Numbered from the stretch's first letter, positions 197 through 63,216 are shown. The stretch: DNA of 64,000 nucleotides from IMGVR_UViG_3300023257_000007:124001-188000; one strand, 5' to 3'. Notes: generated from the letters alone by a model not told the origin. Numbers and translations are program-made.

Positions 197-646
197 TTAA
201 TTGTATTTCGTTCTTCGATTTACTTTTTGAGTTATTTCAAAAAGTAAATCAAGAATATAATTGTCACATTCTTCATTTTTCGTTTCTTCTATTGGAACTG
301 GATTTTCGAAATTTGGATTTTTTTCCGCTCTTTTTTGATCATCTCTAAACCATTGATCTTCATTAATATAATATTCAAATCTCAAACCATTATCTAAAAT
401 AATAATTATCATATCATTTTTACTTTCACTAGAATCAGATGAATTACTAAGTCTAACATCTTTAATTTTACCACCAGGTAAAGTTTGTAAAACTTTCCCA
501 ATATATTCACTAAAATCTAGATCAGATCTATTATTTCTTTGAAATTCTGATTTCCAGTCATCAAATTCATGTCTATCATCTTGATTTAAAGAACCATAAA
601 TATCTTTAAGTTTATTAAAATTCTCGAATTTTTTTAAGTATTTCAT
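197..646 (-). CDS. Hypothetical protein with CTS-like leader (MKYLKKFENF), candidate internal head protein
   Basis: 149-aa ORF with the shared leader; AATATATATAA motif about 30 nt upstream. Confidence 0.7.
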   Translation of the reverse strand: MKYLKKFENFNKLKDIYGSLNQDDRHEFDDWKSEFQRNNRSDLDFSEYIGKVLQTLPGGKIKDVRLSNSSDSSESKNDMIIIILDNGLRFEYYINEDQWFRDDQKRAEKNPNFENPVPIEETKNEECDNYILDLLFEITQKVNRRTKYN

Positions 647-688
647 AATCGTTTTTTTTTTTTGTGGTTATTGATATTATATATATTA

Positions 689-961
689 TTAAGTTGAAAT
701 ATTTTTAGAGAAATTTTTTACAAATGGTATATAAATTTCTCTATAAGGTGACTCATTTTTAATTTGAGGGTGTTTATTAACTAGTTTTTTTAACCTATTT
801 AATTGTTCATCTATATCATCTATTTTAGTAATATCATCTAACATTTCTTCTAAATCTTTTATTTCTAATTTATAAAGACCAAGTTGATCGCTTACTGATT
901 TCCAATCTTTATCATTATTGAATGTATCATTCCATTCGTTGAATTTTCTTAAGTATTTCAT
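689..961 (-). CDS. Hypothetical protein with CTS-like leader (MKYLRKFNEW)
   Basis: 90-aa ORF; upstream region nearly identical to that of 197..646. Confidence 0.7.
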   Translation of the reverse strand: MKYLRKFNEWNDTFNNDKDWKSVSDQLGLYKLEIKDLEEMLDDITKIDDIDEQLNRLKKLVNKHPQIKNESPYREIYIPFVKNFSKNIST

Positions 962-1028
962 AATCTTTTTTTTGGGTTATTGATATTATATATCAACAAA
1001 AAAAAATGGTTTTTAACAAGATTGAAGA

Positions 1029-1433
1029 TTAAAATAATTCTTTTTCTAATTCTTTCATACATTGAATAACACCAAATTTGGTACCTTCCAATATAAAATC
1101 ATATAAAGAAAATATATTATTACTCTTTGGTGAATCATCAAACCAATTATTATCATTACAAATATCATCAACATCACTTTGATATTTCAAATAAAAATTA
1201 AAAATATCTCCATTCTCAACAAAATCTTGTAATTTACCTGGTTCTGGGTCATTAATGTAATCTCTGATAAAATTTTGAACATTAACCAATTCAGTTGTAT
1301 TATCAACTGAATTATCTAATAAATCTAATACTCCTCTCTTTAAAGAAATATATTGTTCGGTTAGTTTATCTTTAAGAGTATCTTCAAGATTCTCTTTTAT
1401 CATTTTTGAATATTCTTCTGTAAATTTTTTCAT
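1029..1433 (-). CDS. Hypothetical protein (weak leader MKKFTEEYSKMIKE)
   Basis: 134-aa ORF; TATATA lies 5 nt before the ATG. Confidence 0.7.
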   Translation of the reverse strand: MKKFTEEYSKMIKENLEDTLKDKLTEQYISLKRGVLDLLDNSVDNTTELVNVQNFIRDYINDPEPGKLQDFVENGDIFNFYLKYQSDVDDICNDNNWFDDSPKSNNIFSLYDFILEGTKFGVIQCMKELEKELF

Positions 1434-1456
1434 AAGACTATATATTATTATATTTT

Positions 1457-2401
1457 TTAAAAATCTGATGCATTTAATAATGTGTATTGATAAATACCAC
1501 CTTCCAATTTAGTTCGATATTTTTCACATAAAGACATAAATCTTTGAAAATCAGACCAATAATGTATTACTTGACAACCTGCAGACCATGATTTAACACC
1601 ACTCCCTGGTGATGATTTTTCGGTACCTACCTTAGTAGAATGTATATTAATACCTCCACCTTCACTACTATTAATATTATAATGAAAAGTTCCGTTTTTT
1701 GTAGGATCTCTATGAACTGGTAAATTATAAGTAGGGTTCAACGCTCTATATCTAGCAGAATTAGTTTGTTTATGATATCCAAGTTTATATGTAAATTGTC
1801 CCTCTTTTAAAATTGAACAACCTTTAGAATTTAATAATTTTTTAAGGTAATAAACTCCAGGTTTTGTAGTACATTCAAATTCTTCAACAATATCATCATA
1901 TACAACTAGCATAGTATCATTCCAATTATTCGGTTTATCAGCGTTTCTAACTCCTATTAATTGAAAAGGTTCAATCCATTTGTATTTTTTTAGTTTAAAA
2001 ATTCGTTTAAGTTGACTAACCGTAATATTTGAAGGTTTTGGTGTTGTGTTTGCTGGATTAGAACTACCATTATTTGAAGTTGATATATTTGTTTGACCAC
2101 CTTGACCTATTGATGAATCTAATTGTTTAGTAGGTGTATAAGTTCCCCATTCAGGGTTATTATATATAACATCTGATTCTCCAAAAGTATCTCCATCTAC
2201 ATACGGATCATAACTATCATCATCGGCATTAATATTACTAGAATATTGATTCATTTCAGAATAAGTAAACTCATTTGCGTCACCATATGAACCAGAATCT
2301 TCAAAATCATCAACACCACTATAAGGATCATATTCTTCTTTTATCACAGTCTCCTGTTTTTGTGTTATTGGCTTTGTTTCATCATATTTAGGTATAGCCA
2401 T
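1457..2401 (-). CDS. Putative YkuD/L,D-transpeptidase-fold cell-wall enzyme, tail-associated lysin candidate
   Basis: Acidic, low-complexity N-terminus; C-domain has INIH-x18-SAGCQV, a His...Cys pair like the YkuD HxnSxGC motif. Start overlaps the stop of the gp5-like gene (TAATG). Confidence 0.55.
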   Translation of the reverse strand: MAIPKYDETKPITQKQETVIKEEYDPYSGVDDFEDSGSYGDANEFTYSEMNQYSSNINADDDSYDPYVDGDTFGESDVIYNNPEWGTYTPTKQLDSSIGQGGQTNISTSNNGSSNPANTTPKPSNITVSQLKRIFKLKKYKWIEPFQLIGVRNADKPNNWNDTMLVVYDDIVEEFECTTKPGVYYLKKLLNSKGCSILKEGQFTYKLGYHKQTNSARYRALNPTYNLPVHRDPTKNGTFHYNINSSEGGGINIHSTKVGTEKSSPGSGVKSWSAGCQVIHYWSDFQRFMSLCEKYRTKLEGGIYQYTLLNASDF

Positions 2402-5220: not shown

Positions 5221-5228
5221 ATCTTATT

Positions 5229-9365: not shown

Positions 9366-10610
9366 ATGGCTAAAAGTACAGGAAAATTTGACTTTTCCAA
9401 ATTAACAAGCGTAGTTGAAGATATTTCAAAAAAGACCGCTATTATGATTGAAAAAGATAATAAACAAACATCTTTTATTGATACTGGTATTTATACTTTC
9501 AATGCACTACTTTCTAAAAATATTCGAACTGGCGGTATTTCAAAGAATAGAATTACCGTATTAGCTGGACCCCCACAATGTGGTAAATCTTATTTATGTT
9601 ATAATATTGCTAGAAATGCTCAAAAAGAAGGATATAATATTATTTATATTGATACTGAATTTTCAATTGAAAAACATGAAATGGAAAAATTCGGTATAAA
9701 TATTAGCGAAGATAGATTAATGTTAATAAGATCAAATAAAGTAGAAGATCTTAAAATAATGTTAACGCAACTTCTAGATAATCTTAAAACACAAAAACAA
9801 GATGGTGTTGATATAGGAAAAACAATCATATTCCTAGATTCAATTGGTCAATTAGCATCCAATAAAGAAGTAGAAGATGCTTTAGGCGGTAAAATTAAAG
9901 TTGATATGTCTAGAGCAAAAGCTATCAAATCTCTCCTTAGAATTATTAATAGTGATCTTGGATATTTAGATATTCCATTAGTAGCTACTAACCATGTTTA
10001 TATGACACAAGATTTATATCCAGTTGCTGTAATGGGCGGTGGTGAAGGAATCACATATACTGCATCTACTGTAGTTTATATGAGTATAGCTAAACTTAAA
10101 ACAGGTGAAGAAAATAAAGATTATAAAATGTATGTGTCTGATATTGGGCAATCTGGTGTTATAGTAACTGCAAAATCTAGAAAGAATAGATTAGCAAAAC
10201 CAATGAAAATTAAATTCGAAATTAATCATAACGAAGGAACAAATCCTTATAGAGGACTTGAAGTATTTTGTACTCCAGAAAACTTTGATAAAGTTGGTAT
10301 TGCAAAAGTTAAAAAAGTAGAATCAGGTCGAGGTAAAGCTAAGACAATAGAATATCAAGCTGGTGGTACTAAATATTACGTTAAACATTTAGATCAAAGT
10401 TTTTATGAAAAATCATTATTTAATGGTAAAATTTTCACTGATGAAGTAATTACTGCTCTTGAACCAATCGTTCAAACATACTTTGAATATTCATCATATG
10501 ATGAACAACAGAAAATCATGGATAATTTGGACTCTGAACACGCAAAATTTGAATCAGATACTGATTTTGATATTGATGGTGATAATGATGGGCAACTTTT
10601 TGATAAATAA
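9366..10610 (+). CDS. uvsX: RecA/UvsX-family recombinase
   Basis: Walker A GPPQCGKS, YIDTE, Walker B IIFLDSIG, 'MSRAKAIKSLLR', TNHVY, MGGGEG. Confidence 0.92.
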   Translation: MAKSTGKFDFSKLTSVVEDISKKTAIMIEKDNKQTSFIDTGIYTFNALLSKNIRTGGISKNRITVLAGPPQCGKSYLCYNIARNAQKEGYNIIYIDTEFSIEKHEMEKFGINISEDRLMLIRSNKVEDLKIMLTQLLDNLKTQKQDGVDIGKTIIFLDSIGQLASNKEVEDALGGKIKVDMSRAKAIKSLLRIINSDLGYLDIPLVATNHVYMTQDLYPVAVMGGGEGITYTASTVVYMSIAKLKTGEENKDYKMYVSDIGQSGVIVTAKSRKNRLAKPMKIKFEINHNEGTNPYRGLEVFCTPENFDKVGIAKVKKVESGRGKAKTIEYQAGGTKYYVKHLDQSFYEKSLFNGKIFTDEVITALEPIVQTYFEYSSYDEQQKIMDNLDSEHAKFESDTDFDIDGDNDGQLFDK

Positions 10611-10642
10611 AAAATAGATAAATTACAAAATAAATTTTTTAA

Positions 10643-11980
10643 ATGAGTAAAGAAACCCTAAACACAGGAATGGAAAAAGTATTCTTCCATTATATATTAG
10701 AAAACCCTAACCAGTTTTCTAATGTAGAACCGTATTTTTTCAGAAATGAAAATATACAATTTATCTACACTATTCTCAGAGATAACTATCTAAATAGTAA
10801 AAAGAAAATTGTACCAACACCACAACAAATCTTTGCAATGACAAAATTGCACGATCCCAATGGTAAGATATCCGACAATTTAATTAAAATGTTACTTAAA
10901 GGAGATAATAGTCAATATGAAAATGATTGGTTAGACCCTAGATTTAAAGCCTGGAAAATTTCTAATCTTGTTAAAAATAATGTTATGAAATCAATTGACT
11001 TTGTCAGAGGAATTGATGATGTAAACTATGATAATGTTGTCGAAGTTGCATCAAAAATTAATCAAATGTTTAACGAAGTTCAACTTATTGATACAGACGA
11101 AGATGATCTCGGAGATGATTTCGATGATCCAGAATCACATAAACAAGATTTTAATAAACATAAAATATCTACAGGTTGGAATTGTTTAGACAATATGATG
11201 AATGGTGGATGGGATTATGCATCACTTATTGTTCTATTAGGTGAAACCAATGTTGGTAAATCTATGTGGCTAAATAATATAGCAGTTAATATAGCAAACC
11301 AAGGTAAAAATGTTGTTTTTGTAACTTTAGAAATGGCTTCACATAAATGTATGAAGAGAATGGGATCAATGAGATTAAAAATTCCAGTTGATAGTTATGA
11401 TGAAAAATCAAAAGATTCAATCTTCATGAAAAATAAAATAAATCAACTTAAATCGAGTAACGGTGGTGTTTTTAATTCAACATCAGGCAAAATATATGTT
11501 AAAAAATTCCCAACAGGTGCTTGTACAGTTACAGATTTAGACAATTATATAACAAAATTAGAACAAGTAAAAAAAATTAAAATTGATGCAGTTTTAGTTG
11601 ATTATATTAATATTATGGGAATTGAAAAAGGTCTCGACTTCGCTAATATGCTTTTCCTTAAAGGTAAACATTTAGCTGAAGGTTTAAGATATCTTGCTGA
11701 CAAACATAACGTAGCATTAATTACAGCAACACAAACTAATAAATCAGTATGGGGCGCTTCGGATATTTCTCTTAGAGATATTCCAGAATCAAAAGCAGTA
11801 GCAGAAACTGCTGATGCAGTGTGGGCAATCATTAGAAACAGTGAAATGAAAAGACAAAATAAATATAGACTCAAAGTTTTAAAACTTAGAGATGGTGAAT
11901 ATAAAGATGAACAAATAAGATATGATTTTAACACTACTTTTCTTTCTATGGAAAATGATGAATTTGTCGGTACTACCTAA
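10643..11980 (+). CDS. gp41: Replicative DnaB-like helicase (T4 gp41-like)
   Basis: STGW..LD, Walker A GETNVGKS, FVTLEM, LVDYIN, TATQTN, ESKAVAETAD, KLRDG. Confidence 0.92.
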   Translation: MSKETLNTGMEKVFFHYILENPNQFSNVEPYFFRNENIQFIYTILRDNYLNSKKKIVPTPQQIFAMTKLHDPNGKISDNLIKMLLKGDNSQYENDWLDPRFKAWKISNLVKNNVMKSIDFVRGIDDVNYDNVVEVASKINQMFNEVQLIDTDEDDLGDDFDDPESHKQDFNKHKISTGWNCLDNMMNGGWDYASLIVLLGETNVGKSMWLNNIAVNIANQGKNVVFVTLEMASHKCMKRMGSMRLKIPVDSYDEKSKDSIFMKNKINQLKSSNGGVFNSTSGKIYVKKFPTGACTVTDLDNYITKLEQVKKIKIDAVLVDYINIMGIEKGLDFANMLFLKGKHLAEGLRYLADKHNVALITATQTNKSVWGASDISLRDIPESKAVAETADAVWAIIRNSEMKRQNKYRLKVLKLRDGEYKDEQIRYDFNTTFLSMENDEFVGTT

Positions 11981-12007
11981 AAATTTAGGTTAAAATATCA
12001 CAAATAT

Positions 12008-12694
12008 ATGGCTAAAAAGAAATCTGAAATTAATAATTTAGATGATATTTTTGATGGATTTGAGAAAGAAATAATAAATACAGAATCAGATGCAGAATCA
12101 GAATCAGAACTAGATACAGAATCAGAATCAGAATCAGATATAGAACTAGATGATGAATTTGTAAAAGAGGAAGAAGATGATTTTGAAATTAGATTTAAAT
12201 CCATTCAAAATAAACATAAATCTGAAGGTAAACACAGTCTTAATAGAGACACAATATTTAACGGTAAATTAGAAGAAAAAGTTGAAGATGAACAATATTT
12301 AACCGATGTGGATTACTATGATGTAAATCCAGCAAAAATTGAACAAGGTACTCAATTTGAATTTGAATCAAAATTCAATGAAGATTATATTAACCTTAAA
12401 GAACTAGAAAAAGATGTCTATGATCTACTATCAGAAAATACAAAACTAGATTTTACTGCTAATAGAAGAAAACCAAATAGACAAACCTTTAATTCGTACT
12501 ACCAAATGTTACTTAACGAACTTAAATATAAATATACTAAAAGTGAAATTTTTGTAACATTATCGTTTTACTTTACCGATAATATATTTAACATGTTTAA
12601 ACTTTTAGATAAAAAACATGCAACAATAATTATCATTGAATTAAAAAACAAAGGATACCTCGAAGATATTATAGGGGACTTTGATTTTCAATAA
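12008..12694 (+). CDS. Acidic hypothetical protein; C-terminus possibly like the gp33 late-transcription coactivator
   Basis: 228 aa with ESESE repeats (gaatca tandem); C-terminal KLLDKKHATIIIIELKNKGYL aligns by eye to gp33 'KLISK......I..EA..LNFL'. Confidence 0.3.
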   Translation: MAKKKSEINNLDDIFDGFEKEIINTESDAESESELDTESESESDIELDDEFVKEEEDDFEIRFKSIQNKHKSEGKHSLNRDTIFNGKLEEKVEDEQYLTDVDYYDVNPAKIEQGTQFEFESKFNEDYINLKELEKDVYDLLSENTKLDFTANRRKPNRQTFNSYYQMLLNELKYKYTKSEIFVTLSFYFTDNIFNMFKLLDKKHATIIIIELKNKGYLEDIIGDFDFQ

Positions 12695-12710
12695 AAAATT
12701 AAACTAATAT

Positions 12711-15236
12711 ATGAATTTTTATGACAGAAACACAGTCTATGAATCTACATTAAAATATTTTAAAGGTGATCAACTCTCAGCTAATGTATGGATTAATAAA
12801 TACGCACTCAAAGACTCAAATGGAAATATATATGAACTTACACCAGATGATATGCATAAAAGATTATCTAAAGAATTACATAGAATAGAATCCAAATATA
12901 TAAACCCAATATCAGAAGAAGAAATATATGATCTTATCAAAGATTTTAAATATATAGTTCCACAAGGTGGTTCAATGTCAGGGATAGGAAATAATTTACA
13001 AACTGTTTCACTTAGCAATTGTTTCGTTGTTGGAAATGAAGCAGATTCATATGGTGGAATATTTATGGCGGATCAAGAACAAGCACAACTTATGAAAAGA
13101 AGAGGAGGAGTTGGTCACGATATGTCTCACATTAGACCAAAAGGTTTTCCTGTTAAAAATTCAGCATTATCATCAACAGGTATAGTTCCATTTATGGAAA
13201 GATATTCAAATACAACAAGAGAAGTTGCACAAGATGGTAGAAGAGGTGCTCTTATGTTATCATGTTCAATAAAACATCCAGATATTGAAGAATTTATAGA
13301 TGCTAAAATGGAACAAGGTAAAGTTACAGGTGCAAACGTATCTGTTAAAATTACCGACGACTTTATGAAAGCCGCTTTAGAAGATAGTGTATTTTTTCAA
13401 CAATATCCAATTGTTAGTGATAATCCAGTTATCGCAAAAGAAGTAAATGCTAAAAACATTTGGGATAAAATTGTGCATAATGCTTGGAAAAGTGCTGAAC
13501 CTGGTATAATGTTTTGGGATACTATGATTAATGAATCTATTCCAGATTGCTACTCAGATTTAGGCTATAAAACAGTATCAACAAATCCATGTGGTGAGAT
13601 CCCTTTATGTCCGTATGATTCTTGTAGATTACTAGCTATTAATCTTTATTCTTATGTTAAAGATCCTTTCACCAAAAATGCTAAATTTAACTATGAATTA
13701 TTTGGCGAACATGTAATAATCGCACAAAGATTTATGGATGATATTATCGATCTAGAAATAGAAAAAATTGATAGTATACTTAAAAAAATTAAAAGTGATC
13801 CAGAAAATCAATTAATCAAACAAGTAGAAATAGATCTTTGGAAAAAGATACAACATAAAGCTAAAGAAGGTAGAAGAACAGGATTAGGCGTAACAGCCGA
13901 AGGTGATATGTTAGCAGCTCTCAATATTAAATATGGTACTAAAAAAGGAACCGAATTTTCAGCAAAAATACACAAATTATTAGCTATCGAAGCATATACA
14001 TCATCTTGTATCATGGCTGAAGAAAGAGGCGCTTTTGAGATATATGATTTTGATAGAGAAAAGAACAATCCTCTTATTAAAAGATTATTTGAAGCAAAAC
14101 CAGAACTTGAAGAACTACACAAAAAACATGGTAGAAGAAATATTGCATTATTAACTATTGCACCAACTGGAACAGTATCTCTAATGACACAAACAACATC
14201 AGGAATTGAACCGGTATTTCAGTTATATTATAAAAGAAATAGAAAAGTAAATCCTAATGACAAAGATTCTAGAGTTGATTTTGTAGATGAAATAGGTGAT
14301 GCATGGGAATCATATAATGTATTTCATCCAAAATTCTTCAAATGGCTTAAAATTAATGATTACAATATTGAAAAAGTTAAGTTGATGTCAAATAATGATA
14401 TTGCTGTAGTAATTGAAAAAACACCTTGGGCTGGTGCAACATCAGCCGATGTAGATTGGCTTGAAAAAGTTAAAATGCAAGGAGAAATTCAAAAATGGGT
14501 TGATCATTCTATTAGTGTAACAGTTAATTTACCTAAAGAAGTAACAGAAGAAATGGTTTCTAAAGTATATGAAGAAGCATGGAAATCTGGTTGTAAAGGT
14601 ATAACAGTTTATAGAGAAGGTTCTAGGAGTGGTGTATTAGTTTCAACAAATGATGATGAAAAGAAAACACTTGAACAAATTATTAAAGAAAACAATGCTC
14701 CTCGAAGACCAAAAAATATGGAATGTGATATTCTTAGATTCCAAAACAAAGGCGAAAAATGGATCGGTTTTGTAGGTTTATTAGAAGGACAACCTTATGA
14801 AATATTTACTGGTATTATTGATTCTTTCAATATTCCAACATATGTAGAAAAAGGTGTGGTTAGAAAAATGAGAGATGAAAATGGTAAATCTAGATATGAT
14901 TTTGTATATGAAGATAAAGATGGATATGAAGTTATTATGACTGGTTTAAGTAGAGCCTTCAATAGAGAATATTGGAATACAGGTAAATTCATCTCTGCTA
15001 TTTTAAGACACGGTATGCCATTACCAAATGTAATTGCTTTAATGGACTCAATTAGTTTAGATGGTGATTATATAGGAACTTGGAAATCAGGTGTTAAGAG
15101 AATGCTTAAAAAATACATTAAAGATAATACAACAATATCAGCAGTTTGTCCAGAATGTGGACAAGATACATTAGTATTTAATAGTGGTTGTGTACAATGC
15201 ACAAACCCAGAATGTGTTTATTCAAAATGTGAATAA
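12711..15236 (+). CDS. nrdJ: Class II (adenosylcobalamin-dependent) ribonucleotide reductase, Bacteroidota type
   Basis: SNCFV, TNPCGEIPL, IAPTGT, GCKGITVYREGSR and a C-terminal CPECG...CVQC zinc ribbon; N-terminus 'KYFKGD.L.A.VWINKYALKD' resembles Bacteroidales NrdJ. Confidence 0.9.
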   Translation: MNFYDRNTVYESTLKYFKGDQLSANVWINKYALKDSNGNIYELTPDDMHKRLSKELHRIESKYINPISEEEIYDLIKDFKYIVPQGGSMSGIGNNLQTVSLSNCFVVGNEADSYGGIFMADQEQAQLMKRRGGVGHDMSHIRPKGFPVKNSALSSTGIVPFMERYSNTTREVAQDGRRGALMLSCSIKHPDIEEFIDAKMEQGKVTGANVSVKITDDFMKAALEDSVFFQQYPIVSDNPVIAKEVNAKNIWDKIVHNAWKSAEPGIMFWDTMINESIPDCYSDLGYKTVSTNPCGEIPLCPYDSCRLLAINLYSYVKDPFTKNAKFNYELFGEHVIIAQRFMDDIIDLEIEKIDSILKKIKSDPENQLIKQVEIDLWKKIQHKAKEGRRTGLGVTAEGDMLAALNIKYGTKKGTEFSAKIHKLLAIEAYTSSCIMAEERGAFEIYDFDREKNNPLIKRLFEAKPELEELHKKHGRRNIALLTIAPTGTVSLMTQTTSGIEPVFQLYYKRNRKVNPNDKDSRVDFVDEIGDAWESYNVFHPKFFKWLKINDYNIEKVKLMSNNDIAVVIEKTPWAGATSADVDWLEKVKMQGEIQKWVDHSISVTVNLPKEVTEEMVSKVYEEAWKSGCKGITVYREGSRSGVLVSTNDDEKKTLEQIIKENNAPRRPKNMECDILRFQNKGEKWIGFVGLLEGQPYEIFTGIIDSFNIPTYVEKGVVRKMRDENGKSRYDFVYEDKDGYEVIMTGLSRAFNREYWNTGKFISAILRHGMPLPNVIALMDSISLDGDYIGTWKSGVKRMLKKYIKDNTTISAVCPECGQDTLVFNSGCVQCTNPECVYSKCE

Positions 15237-18683: not shown

Positions 18684-18697
18684 AATCAGGATTTTCT
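18668..18697. terminator. Bidirectional terminator between convergent genes
   Basis: AGAAAATCCTGAT-taaa-ATCAGGATTTTCT overlaps both stop codons. Confidence 0.75.
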
Positions 18698-20134
18698 ATT
18701 TTGTAATTCCGTTAATTTAAAATAAAAATCTCGAGCTATTTTCTTTAAGTAATATGTACCCATTCCTTGCATGCCTGTTTTCTCGTTATCTGGATCTGGT
18801 ACTCTTTTACCATTTAAGTAGTTTAAACCACTAACATTTGTAATAAATTTATGACCCCCTGAATTTGATTGAATAATATCCCATGCCGTAACATACATAT
18901 CATTTAATATCTTTTTATCATTTTCACTTAATTTTATAAAAGGAACAGTCATCACAGCATCTAACACATTTTCAGATTGCTGATCTAAACCAACAATTTG
19001 ATCTTTAAATAAAGAAACTAAATCTTTAAATCTAAAACCAAATTCATTTGAAATATCTTTTGGAGCTTTATTTCTTGTACCTTTAGCAGCTCTGACCATA
19101 TCTTGTTCAGATATTCTCTTAATATTTTTAACAGTTATTTTAACGTTTTGTAAATTAGTTTTGAAATTATTTAATACATCTTGTGCAATATCGCCCAAGT
19201 TAATATGTTCAAATTTTGGATCTTTCTTTTTAAAAGGATTTGTTGAAACTTGAACTAATCCCATTGGCCAAGCCATAATAAAAAAATTAGCATCTGGATA
19301 TAATTTAAATGAAGCATATCTATCATATGAACCAGTATCAAACATTCTAGGACCACCATATTGCATCATTATATCATTCTTAACAACTAATTTTTTAAAA
19401 TTTTTAAGATTGTCAAAATATGTATTTGCATGTTTTTCAATTGATTCAGCAGGATCTAAACCTAAATCTTTAGCTAATTTCTTAATTTCTAAAAACATAC
19501 TAACTAAACTAGGTTTTGAATTTTCAACTAAACCTACTAAAAAACCAGGTTTATTTTTATAAGCCAATAATAGTTTATTTACAACAAATCCTAATTTCAT
19601 TCTATTTGATTTAGTTGATATATCTTTATTGGTTTTATAGAAAAATTGAATTACATCAGAAGGAGTTATATCTTGACTTGCATAATCTGCACTATCAACA
19701 GTATCAATCATATTAACATCTTCTGCTGAAAATATATCATTAGGTGAAATTTCACCGGAAATAGTACCAGCATTTGATTTAGCTTTCTTAAAATGTGCAG
19801 ACATAGTTTCTACGCCTATTTGCATATCATGGTGGTCTGTATGAATAACAAATTCTGTTTTACCGTGAGCAAAATCTACTAAAACAGCTAATGTACCGGG
19901 TTGTGGTTTATCTAAATGATATTCCATACCACCATATTGAATAGTATGATATCTTACTGTTTTAATACCATATTGTTTCAAATATTCTCTCATAGCAATA
20001 GCTGATGTAACACCATCTAAATCTACATGAAAATATATTTCAGCTTCATCAAAAGTTTTAGATATTTTTTTAATATCACGTATGCCAGATTCATTTAATT
20101 TCAGAAACTGATTATAACTTTCTAATAAACGCAT
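18686..20134 (-). CDS. DHH/DHHA1-family phosphoesterase with CTS-like leader
   Basis: HVDLDG (motif I), VDF (II), DHH (III) and a C-terminal SGGH; likely start MRLLESYNQFLKLNE (20134) rather than 20146. Confidence 0.8.
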   Translation of the reverse strand: MRLLESYNQFLKLNESGIRDIKKISKTFDEAEIYFHVDLDGVTSAIAMREYLKQYGIKTVRYHTIQYGGMEYHLDKPQPGTLAVLVDFAHGKTEFVIHTDHHDMQIGVETMSAHFKKAKSNAGTISGEISPNDIFSAEDVNMIDTVDSADYASQDITPSDVIQFFYKTNKDISTKSNRMKLGFVVNKLLLAYKNKPGFLVGLVENSKPSLVSMFLEIKKLAKDLGLDPAESIEKHANTYFDNLKNFKKLVVKNDIMMQYGGPRMFDTGSYDRYASFKLYPDANFFIMAWPMGLVQVSTNPFKKKDPKFEHINLGDIAQDVLNNFKTNLQNVKITVKNIKRISEQDMVRAAKGTRNKAPKDISNEFGFRFKDLVSLFKDQIVGLDQQSENVLDAVMTVPFIKLSENDKKILNDMYVTAWDIIQSNSGGHKFITNVSGLNYLNGKRVPDPDNEKTGMQGMGTYYLKKIARDFYFKLTELQNRKS

Positions 20135-20138: not shown

Positions 20139-20696
20139 TTAAACATTTTTTAACAGATTCATTAAATCATCATTTAATATCTGTAACACTTTTTTACCAT
20201 TTAGTTCAATTTGTGGGACATTCTTAATTATAGAAAAAACATCATTGCCCTCAACAACTATTTCACTAAATAATTTATCAAGTTGTGGATTTCTTCTATA
20301 ATAAGAAACTAAATTATCAACAAACTCTTTTAATTTTAATTCATGATTTTCATTATATTTCAAAACTAATAAAGATTTATCAGTTTGCTCTATTATCATG
20401 AAATGTAAATCATCTTTAGAATGATTATTTGATTCTAAAAGAGAATAAGCATCAGAAGGTTTATAATTATCTAAAAATTTAGCGACTTTGCCATTAAGTT
20501 TAAACCTAGGTTTTTTCCTACTAACATTTGGATCTCTGTTATCTCTTCTTGGAGGTTTAGATAACTCTTGAGCCATTGCAGCCAAATTAGCCTTCTTAAT
20601 CGGAATTTCCTTTGGAATTTCAGGAACAGAACTAGTAATAGTTTTTGAACTACCACCACCTGTTGATGCAAAATCACTATATTTTTTTAAGCCCAT
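20139..20696 (-). CDS. Hypothetical protein with leader-like N-terminus (MGLKKYSDF)
   Basis: 185-aa ORF in the same operon as the DHH gene. Confidence 0.65.
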   Translation of the reverse strand: MGLKKYSDFASTGGGSSKTITSSVPEIPKEIPIKKANLAAMAQELSKPPRRDNRDPNVSRKKPRFKLNGKVAKFLDNYKPSDAYSLLESNNHSKDDLHFMIIEQTDKSLLVLKYNENHELKLKEFVDNLVSYYRRNPQLDKLFSEIVVEGNDVFSIIKNVPQIELNGKKVLQILNDDLMNLLKNV

Positions 20697-20706: not shown

Positions 20707-21228
20707 TTAAATTTCTTGACTACCTTGTTGTAACTGTTGACCTTGTTGTTGTAATTTCTGGCCTTGTTGTTGTAATTGCTGCCCTTGTGTTTGTAGATTT
20801 TGACCTTGTGCTTGTAAACCATCATCCTGTGCAGGAATATCCTGTGCAGTTTGTTGAGCTTGAGTTTCATCTGGAACATCTTGTAATGGTTGAACTTGTT
20901 GCGTTTGAGCTTGTTGCATTTGAGGTTGAACTTGTGCACCTTTTGCATAATTAGAACCCATTGCCATTGTAACAGGCAAATTCTCAATGTTCATATATGA
21001 TGAAGCGATATAGTTAACAATCATTTCAGCCATTTGTTCTGCACCATAAAGATCTTTAACATCTCTACCTGTCTCATCTTTAACTTTTTTAGTAAAAGCG
21101 TTAATTAATGATTTAGGTACATCAACGTTTGGTAATACTCTATAAACATCATCAATAGCAAATACAGTTTCTTGAACTTTATTTCCTTTTGAATTTTTAA
21201 AATCATTTAGATTTGTTAAATGTTTCAT
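20707..21228 (-). CDS. Hypothetical protein with CTS-like leader and Gln-rich heptad tail
   Basis: MKHLTNLNDF...; QGQNLQT/QGQQLQQ/QGQKLQQ/QGQQLQQ repeats (21-nt tandem, about 20737-20820); TTAATATATAA upstream. Confidence 0.7.
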   Translation of the reverse strand: MKHLTNLNDFKNSKGNKVQETVFAIDDVYRVLPNVDVPKSLINAFTKKVKDETGRDVKDLYGAEQMAEMIVNYIASSYMNIENLPVTMAMGSNYAKGAQVQPQMQQAQTQQVQPLQDVPDETQAQQTAQDIPAQDDGLQAQGQNLQTQGQQLQQQGQKLQQQGQQLQQGSQEI

Positions 21229-21281
21229 AATCGGATTTTTTATTTTTTATTATATATTAAACTTTATTTCTCATTTTTCTT

Positions 21282-25516: not shown

Positions 25517-26491
25517 ATGAAAATATATAAATTTAATTCTTTTATATTTGAAAAAAGTTCTCTAACTTCAATTGGAATACCAAATGAAGTTCTTAAACAA
25601 ATTCAAATAGATTACGAATTACCACATAATATAAAATGGGAAGAACTTACATTTTCAAACACCATCAAATCATCACTAGAAAATGATGACAAAAATCTAT
25701 ATATTGAAATAAATAAAGAAGGCACTAAAGTAAACGTAATAACATCAATAAGAAAAAATAAAAAGAAAATCTACATATTAGACGAATATAAATATAATTT
25801 CGGATGGGAAAAATCAGAAAGAATTGATATAACATTCGCACCAATTGTACAAAAAATGTCATTTAAAAGTATATATTATCACTGTGAATCTAAAAACTTT
25901 AAACTCACATCCAAAAAAGAAAGATCACTTGAAAATATAAATGTCCAATATGAAAATTTTAATACACAATTTAAAAAAGACTTTACTAACAAATTCATAA
26001 GTATAATTAAAAAAGATAAATATAATCTACTAGACAATACTATAAAAGAAAACGGTCTAACAACATTTGATGAATATTTATATGATTTTGAATCACAATG
26101 TTCAGAAGAATTAAAAAGATATTTAACAATTAAAGAACTTATTTCTAGATATGGTAAAGATAAAATATTTAGATCATTTATGTATTTCATTAAAACAAAT
26201 AACTTAAAATTATTTGAATCAAATACTTCATTAAAACAAACAATAAGTTTATTCGTTGACGATTATTGGTATGCAATGGACGAATTAGAAGGAGTATTAC
26301 ATGACTTAGGATATAAAAGAATGAGTGATAGTGGTAAAGATGTTCTTTTTGTAGAAAAAGAAGGCGAAACTAGATTATATTGGTACGGAAAAGCTTTTGA
26401 AATTAAAAATGAACCACATTATAAAATGCCAGAAGACTGGGCAACTTTTGTTAAAGAAATAACACAAAATTTTGAAGATATAAAAATATGA
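25517..26491 (+). CDS. Hypothetical protein with CTS-like leader (MKIYKFNSFIFE) and an internal second leader-like motif
   Basis: TTAATATATA 5 nt before ATG 25517; internal LKLFES near 26204. Confidence 0.7.
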   Translation: MKIYKFNSFIFEKSSLTSIGIPNEVLKQIQIDYELPHNIKWEELTFSNTIKSSLENDDKNLYIEINKEGTKVNVITSIRKNKKKIYILDEYKYNFGWEKSERIDITFAPIVQKMSFKSIYYHCESKNFKLTSKKERSLENINVQYENFNTQFKKDFTNKFISIIKKDKYNLLDNTIKENGLTTFDEYLYDFESQCSEELKRYLTIKELISRYGKDKIFRSFMYFIKTNNLKLFESNTSLKQTISLFVDDYWYAMDELEGVLHDLGYKRMSDSGKDVLFVEKEGETRLYWYGKAFEIKNEPHYKMPEDWATFVKEITQNFEDIKI

Positions 26492-26700
26492 AACATATAA
26501 AAACTTTTGAACAACATGCTGCAGATTATTATGAAGGAGAAACTTCATCTTCACCTTCAGGACCAGTTAAAATGAACTGTCCTAATTGTGGTAATGAAAT
26601 GAATGTAATGTTCCATGAAATTAGTCCAAAACCAATCACTTGTGAATTTTGTGGTGATAAAATAGAATATCCATATGGTCAAAGTTGGCGTTGGGCATAA
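26488..26700 (+). CDS. Small zinc-ribbon protein with CTS-like leader (MKHIKTFEQH)
   Basis: CPNC...CEFC; ATGA overlap with the upstream stop. Confidence 0.7.
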   Translation: MKHIKTFEQHAADYYEGETSSSPSGPVKMNCPNCGNEMNVMFHEISPKPITCEFCGDKIEYPYGQSWRWA

Positions 26701-26701: not shown

Positions 26702-27187
26702 ATGAAACATTTAAAAACATATAATGAAAAATTTTCTTTTAGGAAAGATGATCAAAGAGAAATTAGAAAATGGCTTTTTAATTATATATGTAATGAATAT
26801 TTTGGCGAAAAACAAGAATCATTAAAAAAATATGATAGAAAAATTCGTTTTTCACCAGGTTCTAATGGTAACGATATATATAAAATATATAAAATATTTA
26901 ATGATAATAGATATAGATTTGACATTATATGTGAACTAACAGACGAAGAAATTAAAGATGATATCTATCTCAGTGCAAGTATTGTAAAATTCAAAGATAT
27001 GTATGATATCTCACTTAGACAGACATACAATGAAACAGAAAAACAAATAGAAATTAAAGGTATTGCTTTTGAAGTAAGAGCAATATTAAAAAAGGGAATG
27101 GACAAATCAAAATTTAAATCTGAATTATCTGATAAATTAAGAGAAACTGTTGAACATGAATTCAGCATTATGACTCATTATTTATGA
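26702..27187 (+). CDS. Hypothetical protein with CTS-like leader (MKHLKTYNE)
   Basis: ATG 1 nt after the upstream stop; the leader marks the true start. Confidence 0.7.
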   Translation: MKHLKTYNEKFSFRKDDQREIRKWLFNYICNEYFGEKQESLKKYDRKIRFSPGSNGNDIYKIYKIFNDNRYRFDIICELTDEEIKDDIYLSASIVKFKDMYDISLRQTYNETEKQIEIKGIAFEVRAILKKGMDKSKFKSELSDKLRETVEHEFSIMTHYL

Positions 27188-27636
27188 AATATTTCGGTCC
27201 GGGTAAGTGGAAGATACCAGAAAATGATCGTTTTAAAAATTTTTATAACCTTAAACATTACGAACCACTTTTACTTGACCTTATGAAGGGTTGTGTAATA
27301 GATGATAATTATATACCTAAAGATTTAAAAAAAATTATTTTAGGTGATTATCCATATGGTATCACTAATGATGAAATTAGAAAATATTTATTTAAATTAA
27401 TACATCCAGATGAGGTTAAAGCATACCTTAGAGGATGGTATAAAGTAAGTAAATCTAAAAAGTTAGATTTCACAAAACAAATCTATAAAGATCTTGAATA
27501 TCAAAAAAATAGTAGATTCGAATCTAAAAAAGATTTTAAACCTTTAACTGAAAAATATCCAGAATTTTGGAATGATGTCAAAAAATTATATATCGGAACA
27601 GCTAAAGATATGTTCCAAAATTTAAAATGGAATTAA
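27184..27636 (+). CDS. Hypothetical protein
   Basis: 150-aa ORF, coupled by an ATGA overlap. Confidence 0.6.
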   Translation: MKYFGPGKWKIPENDRFKNFYNLKHYEPLLLDLMKGCVIDDNYIPKDLKKIILGDYPYGITNDEIRKYLFKLIHPDEVKAYLRGWYKVSKSKKLDFTKQIYKDLEYQKNSRFESKKDFKPLTEKYPEFWNDVKKLYIGTAKDMFQNLKWN

Positions 27637-29146: not shown

Positions 29147-29437
29147 ATGGCAAAAATAAATACAGAATATATTCATTTTATACTAGAACAGTTTGAAAAA
29201 ACATTTGAAGAAAAACTTTATGATGTATATGTAGGACATAAAAAAACCAGTGATGATGACAAGGATGTCAAAATCTATACTGCAAAACCAGAAGAATGGG
29301 AACAAGTCATTGATACATTATTAGAAAAAGGTGTAAATCTAGAAGAATATGAACTATGTTCAAAAATACAAGGATTAAAACCTAAAGTATTGGAAGAAGC
29401 AAAGAAAAGACTTGAACAAAAAGAAAATATAGATTAA
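29147..29437 (+). CDS. Hypothetical protein with UVR-like C-terminal helix pair
   Basis: 'LEEYELCSKIQ' resembles the UVR 'E.YE.AA.IRD' motif. Confidence 0.5.
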   Translation: MAKINTEYIHFILEQFEKTFEEKLYDVYVGHKKTSDDDKDVKIYTAKPEEWEQVIDTLLEKGVNLEEYELCSKIQGLKPKVLEEAKKRLEQKENID

Positions 29438-36025: not shown

Positions 36026-36447
36026 TAAAATAAACCTAATTTATTTGATTCAGTTGAATATTTGTATTGTGGATATTTATCCAAAAACTCATCTAATTCA
36101 AAATTGTTTTTTGTTTTAGTTTTTTGTAAAATTTCATTAAGACTATCTTCAACACTAACACCTAAAACTTCGAAATCTTTGTAGATACCAGTTGATAGTT
36201 TATTCTTATATTCAGAATTAGGATTATAAGATATATAACCTTTATTTTCAGAAGGTTTAAAATTCTTTTTATCATTAACAAAATCTAACCATTCTATATT
36301 AAATTTTTCATCACCATTATAAATATCACAAAAAATAGTGTAAATAATTTTCAATTTATCAGGTTTAATATTATATAATGTTAAATCGTTCCCTGTATAA
36401 TCAAGATTAATGTTTTCAAACATTTTATATAAAACTAAATATTTCAT
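36025..36447 (-). CDS. Hypothetical protein with leader-like N-terminus (MKYLVLYKMFEN)
   Basis: TATATA 5 nt before the ATG; ends ESNKLGLF. Confidence 0.65.
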   Translation of the reverse strand: MKYLVLYKMFENINLDYTGNDLTLYNIKPDKLKIIYTIFCDIYNGDEKFNIEWLDFVNDKKNFKPSENKGYISYNPNSEYKNKLSTGIYKDFEVLGVSVEDSLNEILQKTKTKNNFELDEFLDKYPQYKYSTESNKLGLF

Positions 36448-54996: not shown

Positions 54997-55030
54997 AATC
55001 GTTTTTTTTTTGTTGTCATTTGACATATAT

Positions 55031-55651
55031 TTAAAATTTTTGGATAAACCAAAAATTATCTCTTCCCCAAGTGGTCTTTACAATTTTCCCTTTAGCTTGT
55101 AAATCAGTTAAAACATTATTAACATCAGCTTCAGAAAAACCAACATGACCAGCAATAGTATAAGAACTCATCTTAACACCTTTATCTTTCATAACATGTA
55201 AAACATCATTACCTATTTCATTAATATCTTTAGAAATACCTTTAGTTTTTCCTAAAGTATTTAAACCTTTTGGTCCTTCACTTTGTAAATCATTAATAGT
55301 CTTAGAAATACCTAAAACTGGTTTTGCAATAGCTGGTCCTTTAGCTTTTGTATCATTCAATTGATCTAAACTATAACCTGGTTGATTACCTTCAAATTTT
55401 TGAATAAATTCAAATTTATCGTGTCCTAATATATTATTCTTAACGATATGACCACCGTCTTCTAGACCTTTTAGTATATTGTTAACTTGAGCTACAGTAA
55501 CAGCACCACCCAAAGCGGTTTTAATTGACATAGCAGTTGCAGGAACGCCTTTATCTTTCATTGCTGATATAACTTGATCTTTTAAATCACCTATTTCTTT
55601 TGCTACTTTATTAGCTTCTGTGATAAACTCTGTTAATGTTTTAATTTTCAT
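55031..55651 (-). CDS. Tandem winged-helix (Z-alpha-like) protein with CTS-like leader
   Basis: Leader MKIKTLTEFITE|A; two similar domains each containing MKDKGV...VNN(I/V)L..L...G.IVK...F.FIQKF. Confidence 0.6.
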   Translation of the reverse strand: MKIKTLTEFITEANKVAKEIGDLKDQVISAMKDKGVPATAMSIKTALGGAVTVAQVNNILKGLEDGGHIVKNNILGHDKFEFIQKFEGNQPGYSLDQLNDTKAKGPAIAKPVLGISKTINDLQSEGPKGLNTLGKTKGISKDINEIGNDVLHVMKDKGVKMSSYTIAGHVGFSEADVNNVLTDLQAKGKIVKTTWGRDNFWFIQKF

Positions 55652-55756: not shown

Positions 55757-56530
55757 TCATAATTTTATATTTGGAAATAGGTTTTTAACATTATCATAAT
55801 AAAGATTTCTAATATCATCTATAGATATATTAAATTCTTCTAATAAATTAGTTGGAGAATGTTTAGTTTTACCTGTCAGAACATCTTCAAAAAAATTTAA
55901 TTTTTCGTCTAATAAAGTTTTAAAATCTGATTTTTGTCTTTTTGCCATTTTATTTATACCTCTTAAGTATGCTAAAATTTCATCTGGTGTGATGATTTTA
56001 TTTAATAATCCATTTTTTTCTTTAATCATTATGTTATATAAATGTTTATTATTATAAGTAATATTATATCTTTTAGATAATTTATCATTATAATCTGATT
56101 TAACCATGTCGATTATTTCATCTGTAAAGTATTTTTGGAAATGTGACATTTCATGATCAACTAATTCAGATATTTTATAAGATAATTCCTCATATATTTT
56201 TTTAATATTGAGTGGATTTAATTTAATTTCTTCAATAGGAATACTAAATGTTATTACACTTACAAATATCATAAAATTTGTAGTTTTTGGTAAAATTTGA
56301 CCACCAACTTTAACTGAATAATTATCACTTTTTTTAAAATTGATATCAATATCAAAATAAAATCTAATATCATCAAATTTTTTTTCCTCTTTAATTTTTA
56401 TACTCTTTGAATCATTAATATTTTCAACATTCTCAATTATATCAACACATTTATTAAAAAAATATTTTTGTAATGATTTTCTAATCTCTCTCTTTAAATT
56501 AAAATATTCGTAATATTTAATATACTTCAT
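55757..56530 (-). CDS. Putative zincin metalloprotease (HExxH) with CTS-like leader
   Basis: MKYIKYYEYF leader; ELVDHEMSHFQ and a downstream helix DEILAY. Confidence 0.55.
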   Translation of the reverse strand: MKYIKYYEYFNLKREIRKSLQKYFFNKCVDIIENVENINDSKSIKIKEEKKFDDIRFYFDIDINFKKSDNYSVKVGGQILPKTTNFMIFVSVITFSIPIEEIKLNPLNIKKIYEELSYKISELVDHEMSHFQKYFTDEIIDMVKSDYNDKLSKRYNITYNNKHLYNIMIKEKNGLLNKIITPDEILAYLRGINKMAKRQKSDFKTLLDEKLNFFEDVLTGKTKHSPTNLLEEFNISIDDIRNLYYDNVKNLFPNIKL

Positions 56531-60392: not shown

Positions 60393-60416
60393 AAAATTTA
60401 TATTAAATTTATTACT

Positions 60417-60809
60417 TTATAATGTAGGTAAATTTGAAGTTGGTCCTGACATTAATCGACCAGATTGTTTTGCTGGCATATAAACCCATTTTGTATGTTT
60501 TTTATCAATACCAATCAATCCTCTAAATTTATCTACTTCTGCTTCTTTTACTAATTCATCAACATCTTTTTTAGTTAACTTTAATTTAGTTCTATGTGTT
60601 TGTAAAATCTTTTGTTTATGTTTAGTATTTTTATTTAGTTTATTAAATTTTTCTAATATATCACCTTCTACACCAAGTTTTGTCATCAATTCAGTCCAAC
60701 CTTTTTTTACTTTTTCTAAATTTGCTTTATCTTCTTTTGACATAAATGAAAAACCTTCATCTATTTGATTCTCTTTTGAGAATGATTCATATGTCATTAA
60801 ATGTTTCAT
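60417..60809 (-). CDS. Basic hypothetical protein with CTS-like leader (MKHLMTYESF...IDE|G)
   Basis: 130 aa; TTTAATATATAA upstream. Confidence 0.7.
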   Translation of the reverse strand: MKHLMTYESFSKENQIDEGFSFMSKEDKANLEKVKKGWTELMTKLGVEGDILEKFNKLNKNTKHKQKILQTHRTKLKLTKKDVDELVKEAEVDKFRGLIGIDKKHTKWVYMPAKQSGRLMSGPTSNLPTL

Positions 60810-61296: not shown

Positions 61297-61331
61297 TTAT
61301 TATATATTAAATATAAAATAAAATTTTATTA

Positions 61332-61826
61332 ATGATCGGCCCTTTTGAAGGTAAATATGAGTTTCTAAGTAATTTCTACAATTTTTATAAGAAACATGGA
61401 ATTATGATTTCATTCAATGGTATTGAATGTGAAACATCTGAACATGCATATCAAGCTGCAAAATCAACCACTTTTGATGATTTCATGTATGTTATGAATT
61501 CATCTACAGCATCAAAATCTAAAAAAAGAGGCAAAGAAATTAAGAAAAGAATTGATTGGAGAGAAGCTAAATTTAAAGTTATGTATGAAGTTTGTAGAAG
61601 AAAATTTGAAATACCAGAACTTAAACAACTTTTGTTAAATACAGAAGAAGAAGAACTCATAGAACTTAATTGGTGGGGAGATGAAGTATTTGGTGTCAAT
61701 AGCAATACAATGAAAGGCGAAAATCATCTCGGTAAAATATTAATGAAAATAAGAGATGAGTTTAACGGTAAAGTTGATGAAAATAAATCAACTGGACTCG
61801 GCAAAATATTATTTCCAGATGAATGA
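61332..61826 (+). CDS. NADAR (YbiA-like) family hydrolase
   Basis: LSNFY, SEHAYQAAK, DW...K..VM......KF, LLNT....LIE...D..FG, GENHLGKILMKIR. Confidence 0.9.
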   Translation: MIGPFEGKYEFLSNFYNFYKKHGIMISFNGIECETSEHAYQAAKSTTFDDFMYVMNSSTASKSKKRGKEIKKRIDWREAKFKVMYEVCRRKFEIPELKQLLLNTEEEELIELNWWGDEVFGVNSNTMKGENHLGKILMKIRDEFNGKVDENKSTGLGKILFPDE

Positions 61827-62386
61827 TAATTATTGGTATTAGTGGAAAAATTGGTAGTGGTAAAGATACTGTCACCAATTCAATTATTAAAAACTTCAAA
61901 GAATACAAATTTAAAAATAAAAAATTTGCACATTATGTTAAAAAAATCTGTGCACTTCTCACAGGTATAAATCTTAAAGTGCTCACTAATAGACAAACAA
62001 AAGAAAAATATCTAGAAGATTGGGGAATGACAGTTGGTAGGATGTTTCAATTAATAGGAACAGAATCAATTAGAAATAATTTACACCCTGATGCCTGGAT
62101 TTTAACACTAGTTGCCAACAGCAAAGGACAAAATGTTATTATATCAGATGTAAGATTTAAAAATGAAGCAAATTACATAAAAAATAATGGTGGTATTCTA
62201 ATAAGATTGGAAGGCGATCCAAAAGAAATAAGAGGAAAAGATGGTAGAGATTTAAATCATATATCAGAAACAGATTTAGACGATTATGAAGATTTTGACA
62301 TAATATGGAACAACAAACCACCCATCGAAAATCTCAAAAACTTAATGAAAATAATAAAAGATAAGATAAATGAAAAATATAACTAA
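61823..62386 (+). CDS. Deoxynucleoside monophosphate kinase (T4 gp1-like)
   Basis: GISGKIGSGKDT, FA..VK, R.FQLIGTE..R....D.WI, ISDVRFKNEA, H.SET.LD. Confidence 0.85.
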   Translation: MIIIGISGKIGSGKDTVTNSIIKNFKEYKFKNKKFAHYVKKICALLTGINLKVLTNRQTKEKYLEDWGMTVGRMFQLIGTESIRNNLHPDAWILTLVANSKGQNVIISDVRFKNEANYIKNNGGILIRLEGDPKEIRGKDGRDLNHISETDLDDYEDFDIIWNNKPPIENLKNLMKIIKDKINEKYN

Positions 62387-62687
62387 AGTTTATGAAATAA
62401 AAGACTCTAAAATTGATATAACAATCAATTATGGTTTAGATAAAGAACAAATATTAAATCACCCAATATCTTTTGATGAAAAAAATCCACATATATTATA
62501 TGTATTTCTTTCAAGTAAAGAAATGGAAAAACATACAGATTGGTTATGGGAAAATAAAGAAAATAATCCTTTCGTAGTTGTTATGTTAACACAATACGAA
62601 GAAAAAGATTTCGATGAAATAGAATCAAGCATAGATTTATTATATACTTCTGTAAAAGAAAAATTTGAAAATAAGAATGACAATTAG
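62370..62687 (+). CDS. Hypothetical protein
   Basis: 105 aa, in the operon. Confidence 0.55.
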   Translation: MKNITKVYEIKDSKIDITINYGLDKEQILNHPISFDEKNPHILYVFLSSKEMEKHTDWLWENKENNPFVVVMLTQYEEKDFDEIESSIDLLYTSVKEKFENKNDN

Positions 62688-62931
62688 TGAACTATTTGAA
62701 AAAGAAAGACCAATGTATGTTATTTGTGTAAAATCAGATTCAGCTTATAATGTATCTGAAGGTACAAAATATAAAATTGAATCTTATACTACTAGAAGTC
62801 TTAAATTATTCATGTTATTTAAAAATGATAATAATGATGAATTAGAATTACAAGTAGGTGAATCTTCAAAACATTTTATACCAATTATTTCTGATAGAAA
62901 AAGAAAATTAGATAGAGTGAGAGGATTATAA
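62677..62931 (+). CDS. Hypothetical protein
   Basis: ATG at 62677, in frame with the track ORF. Confidence 0.5.
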   Translation: MTISELFEKERPMYVICVKSDSAYNVSEGTKYKIESYTTRSLKLFMLFKNDNNDELELQVGESSKHFIPIISDRKRKLDRVRGL

Positions 62932-63216
62932 TTATCTTTTAACATCTCTAATAACTTTATCCATTCCTTTTTTCATATCTTCTATTAAAGATAATATAGT
63001 TTTATATTGTGGATCTTTTTTATGATATTTATCTAATTCTTGATATAATCTTTGTAATTCTTCTTCAAAATCTGGTCGTTTATTTTGTTTGCCAGTTTTT
63101 ATTCCTTTAGTATAAACAGTTCCTTCCTCATCTACAAACCTATTTCTCCAATTCCAACCTATAGGCCCAATTTTATTTTCATTAACATAATCATCAAAAT
63201 TACAAATATGTTTCAT
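62932..63216 (-). CDS. Hypothetical protein with CTS-like leader (MKHICNFDDYVNE)
   Basis: 94-aa lone - strand gene within a + strand block. Confidence 0.65.
   Translation of the reverse strand: MKHICNFDDYVNENKIGPIGWNWRNRFVDEEGTVYTKGIKTGKQNKRPDFEEELQRLYQELDKYHKKDPQYKTILSLIEDMKKGMDKVIRDVKR

Follow-up and report, generated by a model that had tools for sequence, protein, structure and literature searches.

Leader peptides resembling the T4 capsid-targeting sequence on many unrelated proteins of a huge phage that also codes for T4-type head genes

The internal proteins of bacteriophage T4 are a diverse set with only an N-terminal capsid-targeting sequence (CTS) in common. The prohead protease gp21 removes their propeptides of 10–20 residues, and the CTS is able to load foreign proteins into the head (PMC3012670; PMC5694885). 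In the giant phages phiKZ and SPN3US, whose capsids are large, many internal proteins are cut after Glu by a distant gp21 relative (S80); the propeptides, thought to be prohead-targeting, are mostly longer than 100 residues, and the cut motif is S/A/G-x-E (PMC5694885). The stretch described here, IMGVR_UViG_3300023257_000007:124001-188000 (64,000 nucleotides; hereafter the window), belongs to a huge phage in which about one quarter of the window genes, between positions 197 and 63,216, begin with a short common peptide resembling the T4 capsid-loading tag.

As in T4 (IPI, IPII, IPIII and Alt, with gp21), the N-terminal leader is the sole common part of diverse proteins. One of its two forms, class B, has the core [FY]xx[FY][IL]xE of the T4 CTS and of the gp23 cut site, and the tagged genes lie in variable arrays in a genome with a gp21-fold protease, a gp23-type capsid protein and a gp20-type portal. 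Unlike the handful of tagged proteins in T4, about 20 are found in these 64 kb, 24 among 164 sampled proteins of the same genome and 68 among the 907 proteins of a 635-kb relative, LR745206. Also unlike T4, there is a second form, class A, without the canonical Ile or Leu at P3; protease and scaffold are one fused protein, the scaffold bearing tandem 14-residue repeats; and among the cargo there would be enzymes, namely a CCA-type nucleotidyltransferase and a DHH-like protein. The difference from phiKZ and SPN3US lies in leaders of 9–15 residues, a hydrophobic-x-E motif and head genes of T4 type. Literature searches by leader strings and by topic returned no paper on these leaders or on expanded CTS systems; as far as searched, the expansion is unreported.

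The window has a G+C content of 25% and is 100% identical to part of a 344,634-bp IMG/VR contig (IMGVR_UViG_3300022868_000009) and to a 239,722-bp ENA contig. It codes for T4-like replication genes (UvsX/RecA-like, DnaB-like, gp32-like, RNR and a fused topoisomerase II) and for tail genes (gp5-like hub, sheath and tube); no tRNA genes were found in it. Among public records it comes nearest to huge phages, unannotated, that were described by Al-Shayeb et al. 2020. The closest of these are LR756501 (735 kb) and LR745206, with capsid proteins 64% and 50% identical respectively, and the sheath is 33–39% identical across the five huge-phage records. That study assigns these genomes to its Mahaphage clade, with Bacteroidetes as predicted hosts (PMC7162821).

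Two leader forms at the starts of unrelated proteins

A preliminary description of the window had listed 20 starts carrying one related leader. All 20 coordinates are ATG starts of open reading frames (ORFs) with the N-termini quoted there, and the leader is present at 19 of them, weakly at 1433 and 36447. The start at 20696 is doubtful, and a further member at 29147 had been missed. The view of a single leader had to be given up, as the set splits into two forms. Class A is MK[YH][LI]K[TK][FY][EN]. Class B is [FY]xx[FY][ILV]xE, ending at residue 10–15, which is the pattern of the T4 CTS; examples end in FNQFINE, YIQFINE, TEFITE, SEFLNE and NSFIFE.

Both forms are specific to protein starts. 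The class A core K[YH][LI][KRMT][KTNY][FYL][END] gave 10 matches in 20,173 window residues, all at residue 2; with a slightly different regular expression, nine window proteins matched at residue 2 and none elsewhere. A class B core preceded by K, R, N, T, S or Q and beginning at residues 2–8 was found in five window proteins, against about 0.1 expected from the internal rate. The leaders are charged or polar (K, E, N and single aromatics) without a hydrophobic stretch, and no signal of the Sec, Tat or lipoprotein type was seen in them.

Behind the leaders the bodies are unrelated, as had been claimed. In all-against-all BLASTP the tagged bodies were mutually dissimilar, with the sole exception of one split paralogue (26702-27187 and 27184-27636 versus 55757-56530). 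Three tagged proteins were assigned to three different families and the others were unmatched (Pfam, PHROGs); none of the ten tagged proteins scanned against PHROGs matched an 'internal virion protein'. The absence of the leader from core genes also held in the window: it is lacking in the replication genes (UvsX-like, DnaB-like, RNR, gp32-like, topoisomerase II) and in the baseplate, sheath and tube genes.

Tagged genes of the window. Coordinates and strand are followed by the leader; a slash marks a cut site, here and below (predicted in all leaders of the list).

197-646, minus: class A leader MKYLKKFENF; 149 aa, no family match
689-961, minus: class A leader MKYLRKFNEW; 90 aa
1029-1433, minus: weak class B-like leader MKKFTEEYSKMIKE/N; the LR745206 orthologue begins MIKKYLQFIKE, a clear class B
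18686-20134, minus: DHH-like phosphoesterase (below the Pfam cut-off), class B leader ending SYNQFLKLNE/S; an orthologue begins MISKYNQFINE
20139-20696, minus: doubtful member MGLKKYSDFAST (start MGLKKYSDF), without Glu
20707-21228, minus: class A variant MKHLTNLNDFKN; family of 52 homologues
25517-26491, plus: class B leader MKIYKFNSFIFE/K; 324 aa; TTAATATATA lies 15 nt upstream
26488-26700, plus: class A leader MKHIKTFEQH; 70-aa zinc-ribbon-like protein
26702-27187, plus: class A leader MKHLKTYNEK; N-terminal half, paralogue of 55757-56530
29147-29437, plus: class B leader MAKINTEYIHFILE/Q; absent from the earlier list
30075-31382, minus: CCA-type tRNA nucleotidyltransferase, class B leader MNKLYKYSEFLNE/N; Pfam domain from residue 46
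32400-32633, plus: class A leader MKYLKTYEEL; 77 aa
35037-35333, minus: class B leader MKTKFNQFINE/T; 98 aa; gene run directly downstream of the tail tube gene
36025-36447, minus: partial (weak) class A leader MKYLVLYKMFEN; 140 aa
51290-52045, minus: class B leader MKVINTYIQFINE/Q; 251 aa
52042-52377, minus: class A leader MKYLKTYNER; 111 aa
54631-54996, minus: class A leader MKHLKKFENL; start 54996 preferred to 55026 (ATG within the promoter-like motif)
55031-55651, minus: class B leader MKIKTLTEFITE/A; winged-helix protein (DUF7343)
55757-56530, minus: class A leader MKYIKYYEYF; 257 aa; HEMSH motif at residue 126, no family match
60417-60809, minus: class A leader MKHLMTYESF; 130 aa
62932-63216, minus: mixed leader MKHICNFDDYVNE/N; 94 aa

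Three enzymes had been named among the tagged proteins. The CCA-type nucleotidyltransferase stands, with a match to the PolyA_pol head domain at 1.1e-29 (Pfam). The DHH assignment is sub-threshold (26.1 bits against a Pfam cut-off of 28.1), and of the supposed HExxH protease there is only the HEMSH motif, with no family match. The adjacent ORFs 26702-27187 and 27184-27636 overlap by ATGA and jointly match the single 257-aa HEMSH-motif protein; they therefore represent a paralogue that was split, or else a frame break, programmed or accidental.

To follow the leader in a wider sample, 3,327 proteins were taken from loci fetched by criteria other than the leader itself. Of these proteins, 94 have the class A core at residue 2, and another 78 have class B close to the start. 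Codons at the conserved leader positions mirror those of the bodies: all six Leu codons occur at position 4, and Lys at position 2 is written AAA or AAG in a ratio of 63 to 15. As synonymous codons vary as they do in the bodies, selection must act on the peptide. The LR745206 orthologues of the DHH-like protein, of the CCA enzyme and of two small proteins retain leaders at about 35% identity.

The modularity of the leader is best seen at the CCA enzyme. Its best 120 homologues (42–82% identical), almost all metagenomic, nearly all begin M..K.[YF]..F[IL].E[NK]. A leader-like N-terminal extension is present in 62 of 69 aligned homologues (about 43–82% identical), nearly all with the class B pattern; the seven leaderless ones begin at or just past the predicted cut Glu. 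In the AlphaFold model of the enzyme, the confidence score (predicted local distance difference test) is 46–63 for residues 1–20 and above 90 beyond. In sequence and model alike, the leader thus behaves as a separable extension outside the fold.

The motif, first noticed in the window, was scanned for in the sampled proteins of the same genome and in the relative LR745206, with the counts given above. In the genome of the window a tandem array of six leader genes is found a few kb downstream of the terminase gene, and further ones lie on either side of the head module. In LR745206 the tagged genes are clustered (14 adjacent pairs versus 5 expected, P = 0.0002). A 27-nt degenerate leader pattern found 61 loci in IMG/VR, all of them ORF starts, on contigs of 20–33% G+C and with varied bodies. 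The same pattern in cellular genomes (596 Gb, 185,579 genomes) found just 16 loci, all in metagenome-assembled genomes (MAGs) and most of them in one bin with tandem paralogue arrays. At least 10 leader-bearing contigs also hold a gp23-type capsid gene. The leader is virus-specific.

That bin is the MAG 'Candidatus Muiribacterium halophilum' JALOAD01. Two of its loci (L372 and L383; 26% G+C) have eight paralogues each, of 245–350 aa, which all begin MKY[LI][KR].FNE[SN].N.SEI..ICEKYNI, so that here the leader heads one expanded family. Four more leader matches lie on another JALOAD01 contig (L377). Probably these leader contigs come from phages and were binned with the MAG in error.

T4-type head genes and matching cut-site motifs

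A gp21-like protease elsewhere in the genome, which the preliminary description had raised, was found together with the other head genes on a contig 100% identical to the window (locus L317). A walk along the ENA contig from the terminase gene, with pattern scans, did not reach the capsid gene, which was located through the capsid protein of a sister clade. This locus codes for a T4-type portal (Portal_T4, 3.8e-67) and a gp23-type capsid protein (Gp23, 6.4e-27). Directly upstream of the capsid gene, at L317:7428-9863, lies an 811-aa protein in which a protease and a scaffold are fused.

The first ~175 residues of the fusion align to T4 gp21 (BLASTP 3e-8), and its motifs NRNERIY, GEFDHP and VSSRAAG align with the gp21 motifs that bear the catalytic His and Ser (GEFDHP to GELNHP, VSSRAAG to VSSRGLG). 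The putative catalytic His and Ser are invariant in 17 protease sequences. An alignment of the clade protease (LR745206 and relatives) matched T4 gp21 with hhalign at 1.4e-5. Sequence-only PDB searches with the protease domain or its profile gave no match. When the predicted structure of the protease domain was searched with Foldseek, the top hit was 5JBL, T4 gp21 (E 2.4e-7, probability 1.00, target template modelling score 0.70), with herpesvirus proteases a distant next.

The scaffold part has 11–13 matches to [FY]xx[FY][ILV]xE, about 11 of them within 14-residue tandem repeats of consensus KNIAYSEY[IL]AE[NH]LD, followed by a Gln-rich stretch; the LR745206 homologue is built alike. The sequence [LI]NES after the protease domain is invariant. 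T4 gp23 is cut at FGSFLTE/A (T4 record), and the T4 CTS has the same [FY]xx[FY][IL]xE pattern; class B is thus the same seven-residue pattern as two substrates of T4 gp21, the internal-protein CTS and the gp23 cut. Compared by eye, the N-terminal domain of the clade capsid protein shares the motifs KKW.PVL and WM.EYAE with T4 gp23 and ends H[QS][ILM]NE/N in the stretch of the FLTE/A cut. The capsid protein of this genome has a conserved MNE/N at that position. Given these matching motifs, class B leaders therefore end in an apparent extended site of the phage's own head protease. Among class B leaders Ile or Leu stands at P3 in 92%, and Glu at residue 10–13 in most.

A cultured jumbo phage of Bacteroidota and distant relative, Tenacibaculum phage PTm1 (Shirahamavirus), likewise has protease and scaffold fused in one gene, which stands directly upstream of the gene for a related capsid protein and was annotated by the PTm1 authors as 'prohead core scaffolding protein and protease'. 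The N-terminal domain of the PTm1 capsid protein has LTINE/N, comparable to the NE/N of the window clade. PTm1 differs in a capsid protein only ~31% identical over half its length and in other scaffold repeats, and no class A leaders were found in 11 kb of its head region.

Further head-like sequences were observed. About 10 kb downstream of the terminase gene, at L282:10001-10537, a 178-aa 'mini capsid protein' has gp23-like N-terminal motifs without the cut-site Glu. At L282:8285-8914 lies a 209-aa protein with degenerate scaffold repeats, and between the two is a clamp-loader-like AAA gene. In the LR745206 clade, capsid-like paralogues of 230–255 aa lie ~6 kb downstream of the capsid gene. 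In the window itself, the class A protein 197-646 has DFSEYIGK at about residues 44–51, near one scaffold repeat unit.

Proposed role of the leader and competing explanations

From these genes we infer a path of targeting, cleavage, residence in the virion and ejection. The leader would be this lineage's counterpart of the T4 CTS, a short N-terminal propeptide that brings otherwise unrelated accessory proteins into the prohead scaffolding core. The gp21-type prohead protease would then cut after the Glu of class B leaders and of those class A leaders, a minority, with [ILV]xE at their end; the same protease may likewise cut the N-terminal domain of the capsid protein and chop the repeat-rich scaffold. 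Once mature, these proteins would stay alongside the DNA inside the head and probably reach the host together with it. Since a T4-type protease and capsid protein are present in the same genome, dozens of different proteins may be packed along with the phage DNA. We lean, by somewhat more than an even chance, to a variant of the T4 CTS system that has been greatly enlarged in huge phages. The arrangement of the tagged genes, clustered and in tandem near the terminase gene, resembles the T4 internal-protein locus.

The two forms differ in how well they fit this role. For class B, a prohead-targeting propeptide removed by the protease is well supported by the sequences. For class A, a capsid-targeting leader is plausible; its role is less certain because most class A leaders are without the canonical cut site. 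The earlier claim that a T4-like tag had been expanded into a general system is thus partly supported, by the class B pattern and the genome-wide counts, and weakened at class A, and the proposed [IL]-x-E cut motif likewise applies to class B and to only a minority of class A.

Several observations weigh against the proposed expansion of the T4 system. In class A, [ILVM]xE ending at residues 10–12 is seen in only 11 of 94 leaders; this majority form usually has an aromatic at P3 ([FY]-[NE]-E) instead of Ile or Leu. A canonical cut further downstream was considered for class A, as hinted by the family of 20707-21228, in whose 52 homologues the leader is followed by a variable linker and then a conserved [IV]xE ahead of the body; [ILVM]xE is not enriched at residues 6–40 of class A proteins. 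Many tagged proteins are acidic, and T4 internal proteins are basic. Dozens of cargo species per capsid are far beyond T4. The protease scores 21.9 bits (own genome) and 16.8 bits (LR745206) against Pfam S77 (PF03420), below the gathering cut-off of 27, and by sequence would be a distant S77 member. The idea that leaders are copies of the scaffold repeat was rejected: a matrix from 172 repeat units scored only the scaffold-like 209-aa protein and did not pick the leaders, and therefore only the seven-residue pattern is common to both. Lastly, ATATATA lies ~30 nt upstream of the capsid, protease, sheath and baseplate genes and precedes 15 of 29 tagged genes versus 38 of 132 others (Fisher P = 0.03). 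As it stands before a third of all genes, many of them untagged, it is a common promoter type and no proof of late expression.

The difference between the two forms gives room to the explanation that only class B is a cleavable capsid-targeting sequence and class A a separate, uncleaved module, docking on a partner common to the tagged proteins and of phage or host origin (such as a chaperone, an AAA+ machine or the ribosome), or serving small accessory proteins as a stability or degradation signal. The 83 of 94 class A leaders without canonical [ILVM]xE and the lack of downstream enrichment speak for it, as do the shorter class A proteins (median 145 aa versus 193 for class B), the single full A/B hybrid seen, and a ClpB-like AAA+ protein and IF3 coded by the phage. 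Yet two features of class A, MK..K.[FY] and Glu8 or Glu9 (79 of 94), recur in class B and in the front half of the T4 CTS, and [FY]NES in class A is similar to the [LI]NES that invariably follows the protease domain. The two classes are bridged by hybrids such as MKHLKQYESFLNE and by forms ending YK[ILV]FES, and arrays of class A genes are found close to the terminase gene and on both sides of the capsid gene. We regard such a division of roles as unlikely, though it deserves to be kept in mind.

Two further explanations leave the leader no role in sorting or make the peptide a by-product. It might aid expression, as a favourable coding start or nascent peptide for Bacteroidota ribosomes that work without a Shine-Dalgarno sequence. 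The genome is indeed A/T-rich, its upstream regions are A-rich and lack Shine-Dalgarno sequences, MK starts are frequent among other N-termini of the window too, and four genes have AAAAAAA(C)GATT before the ATG in common. Against this, residues are fixed out to position 9–13 while synonymous codons vary freely, the most highly expressed gene types (capsid, sheath, tube and baseplate) are leaderless, leaderless homologues exist, and the pattern is almost absent from the 185,579 cellular genomes, A/T-rich ones included. The A/T-rich start bias that the preliminary description had allowed for is ruled against by this conservation of the peptide and by the near-absence from cellular genomes, and a role in expression is very improbable. 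The slimmest chance is given to a recombination junction acting mainly at the DNA level, through which accessory cassettes are swapped. The accessory nature of the tagged genes, their clustering and the promoter-like motif that many of them have to themselves count in its favour, and shuffling at the conserved CTS-coding sequence has been proposed for the T-even internal-protein locus. However, codon variation breaks up the nucleotide identity, and the residues are kept in orthologues at 35–50% identity in which DNA homology is gone. Such recombination could be a secondary effect, and it leaves the match to the cut site unexplained.

The expanded T4 system may also be taken further, to a general cargo code of Mahaphage-type phages in which ~50–70 proteins per genome, including tRNA-repair and phosphoesterase enzymes and many small proteins, would be scaffold-loaded, protease-released and injected. 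This wider proposal is possible but doubtful. If it were true, an early proteome would come ready-made with the phage, and for uncultivated phages the sequence alone could tell which proteins are injected. Should the leader act as it does in T4, the proteins that uncultivated huge phages carry in the capsid and deliver on infection would be predictable by a simple sequence rule. These would likely be counter-defence and take-over factors, most without known relatives. A T4 system of few proteins could then grow to 7–15% of a genome, which would be a partial answer to what huge capsids contain besides DNA, and new short tags for loading proteins into phage heads would become available. The scaffold repeats, with the same seven-residue pattern as the leader, suggest a testable idea of how the tag is recognized.

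Upstream regions and genes outside the window

TT[TA]ATATATA lies 15 or 30–40 nt upstream of many window starts (8741, 39426, 51203, 21260, 32367 and ~15 more) and is likely the main phage promoter. It is missing from the replication cluster 9366-15236 and from the gp32-like gene. The untranslated AAAAAAA(C)GATT mentioned above stands directly before the ATG of four class A genes (647-662, 962-975, 21229-21245 and 54997-55012), which points to recent duplication or a shared initiation region.

Outside the window, the genome (loci L162, L282 and L283) codes for the translation initiation factor IF3, the ClpB-like protein with two AAA+ domains, IMPDH and NUDIX proteins, and for pieces of DNA polymerase B with intein hits.

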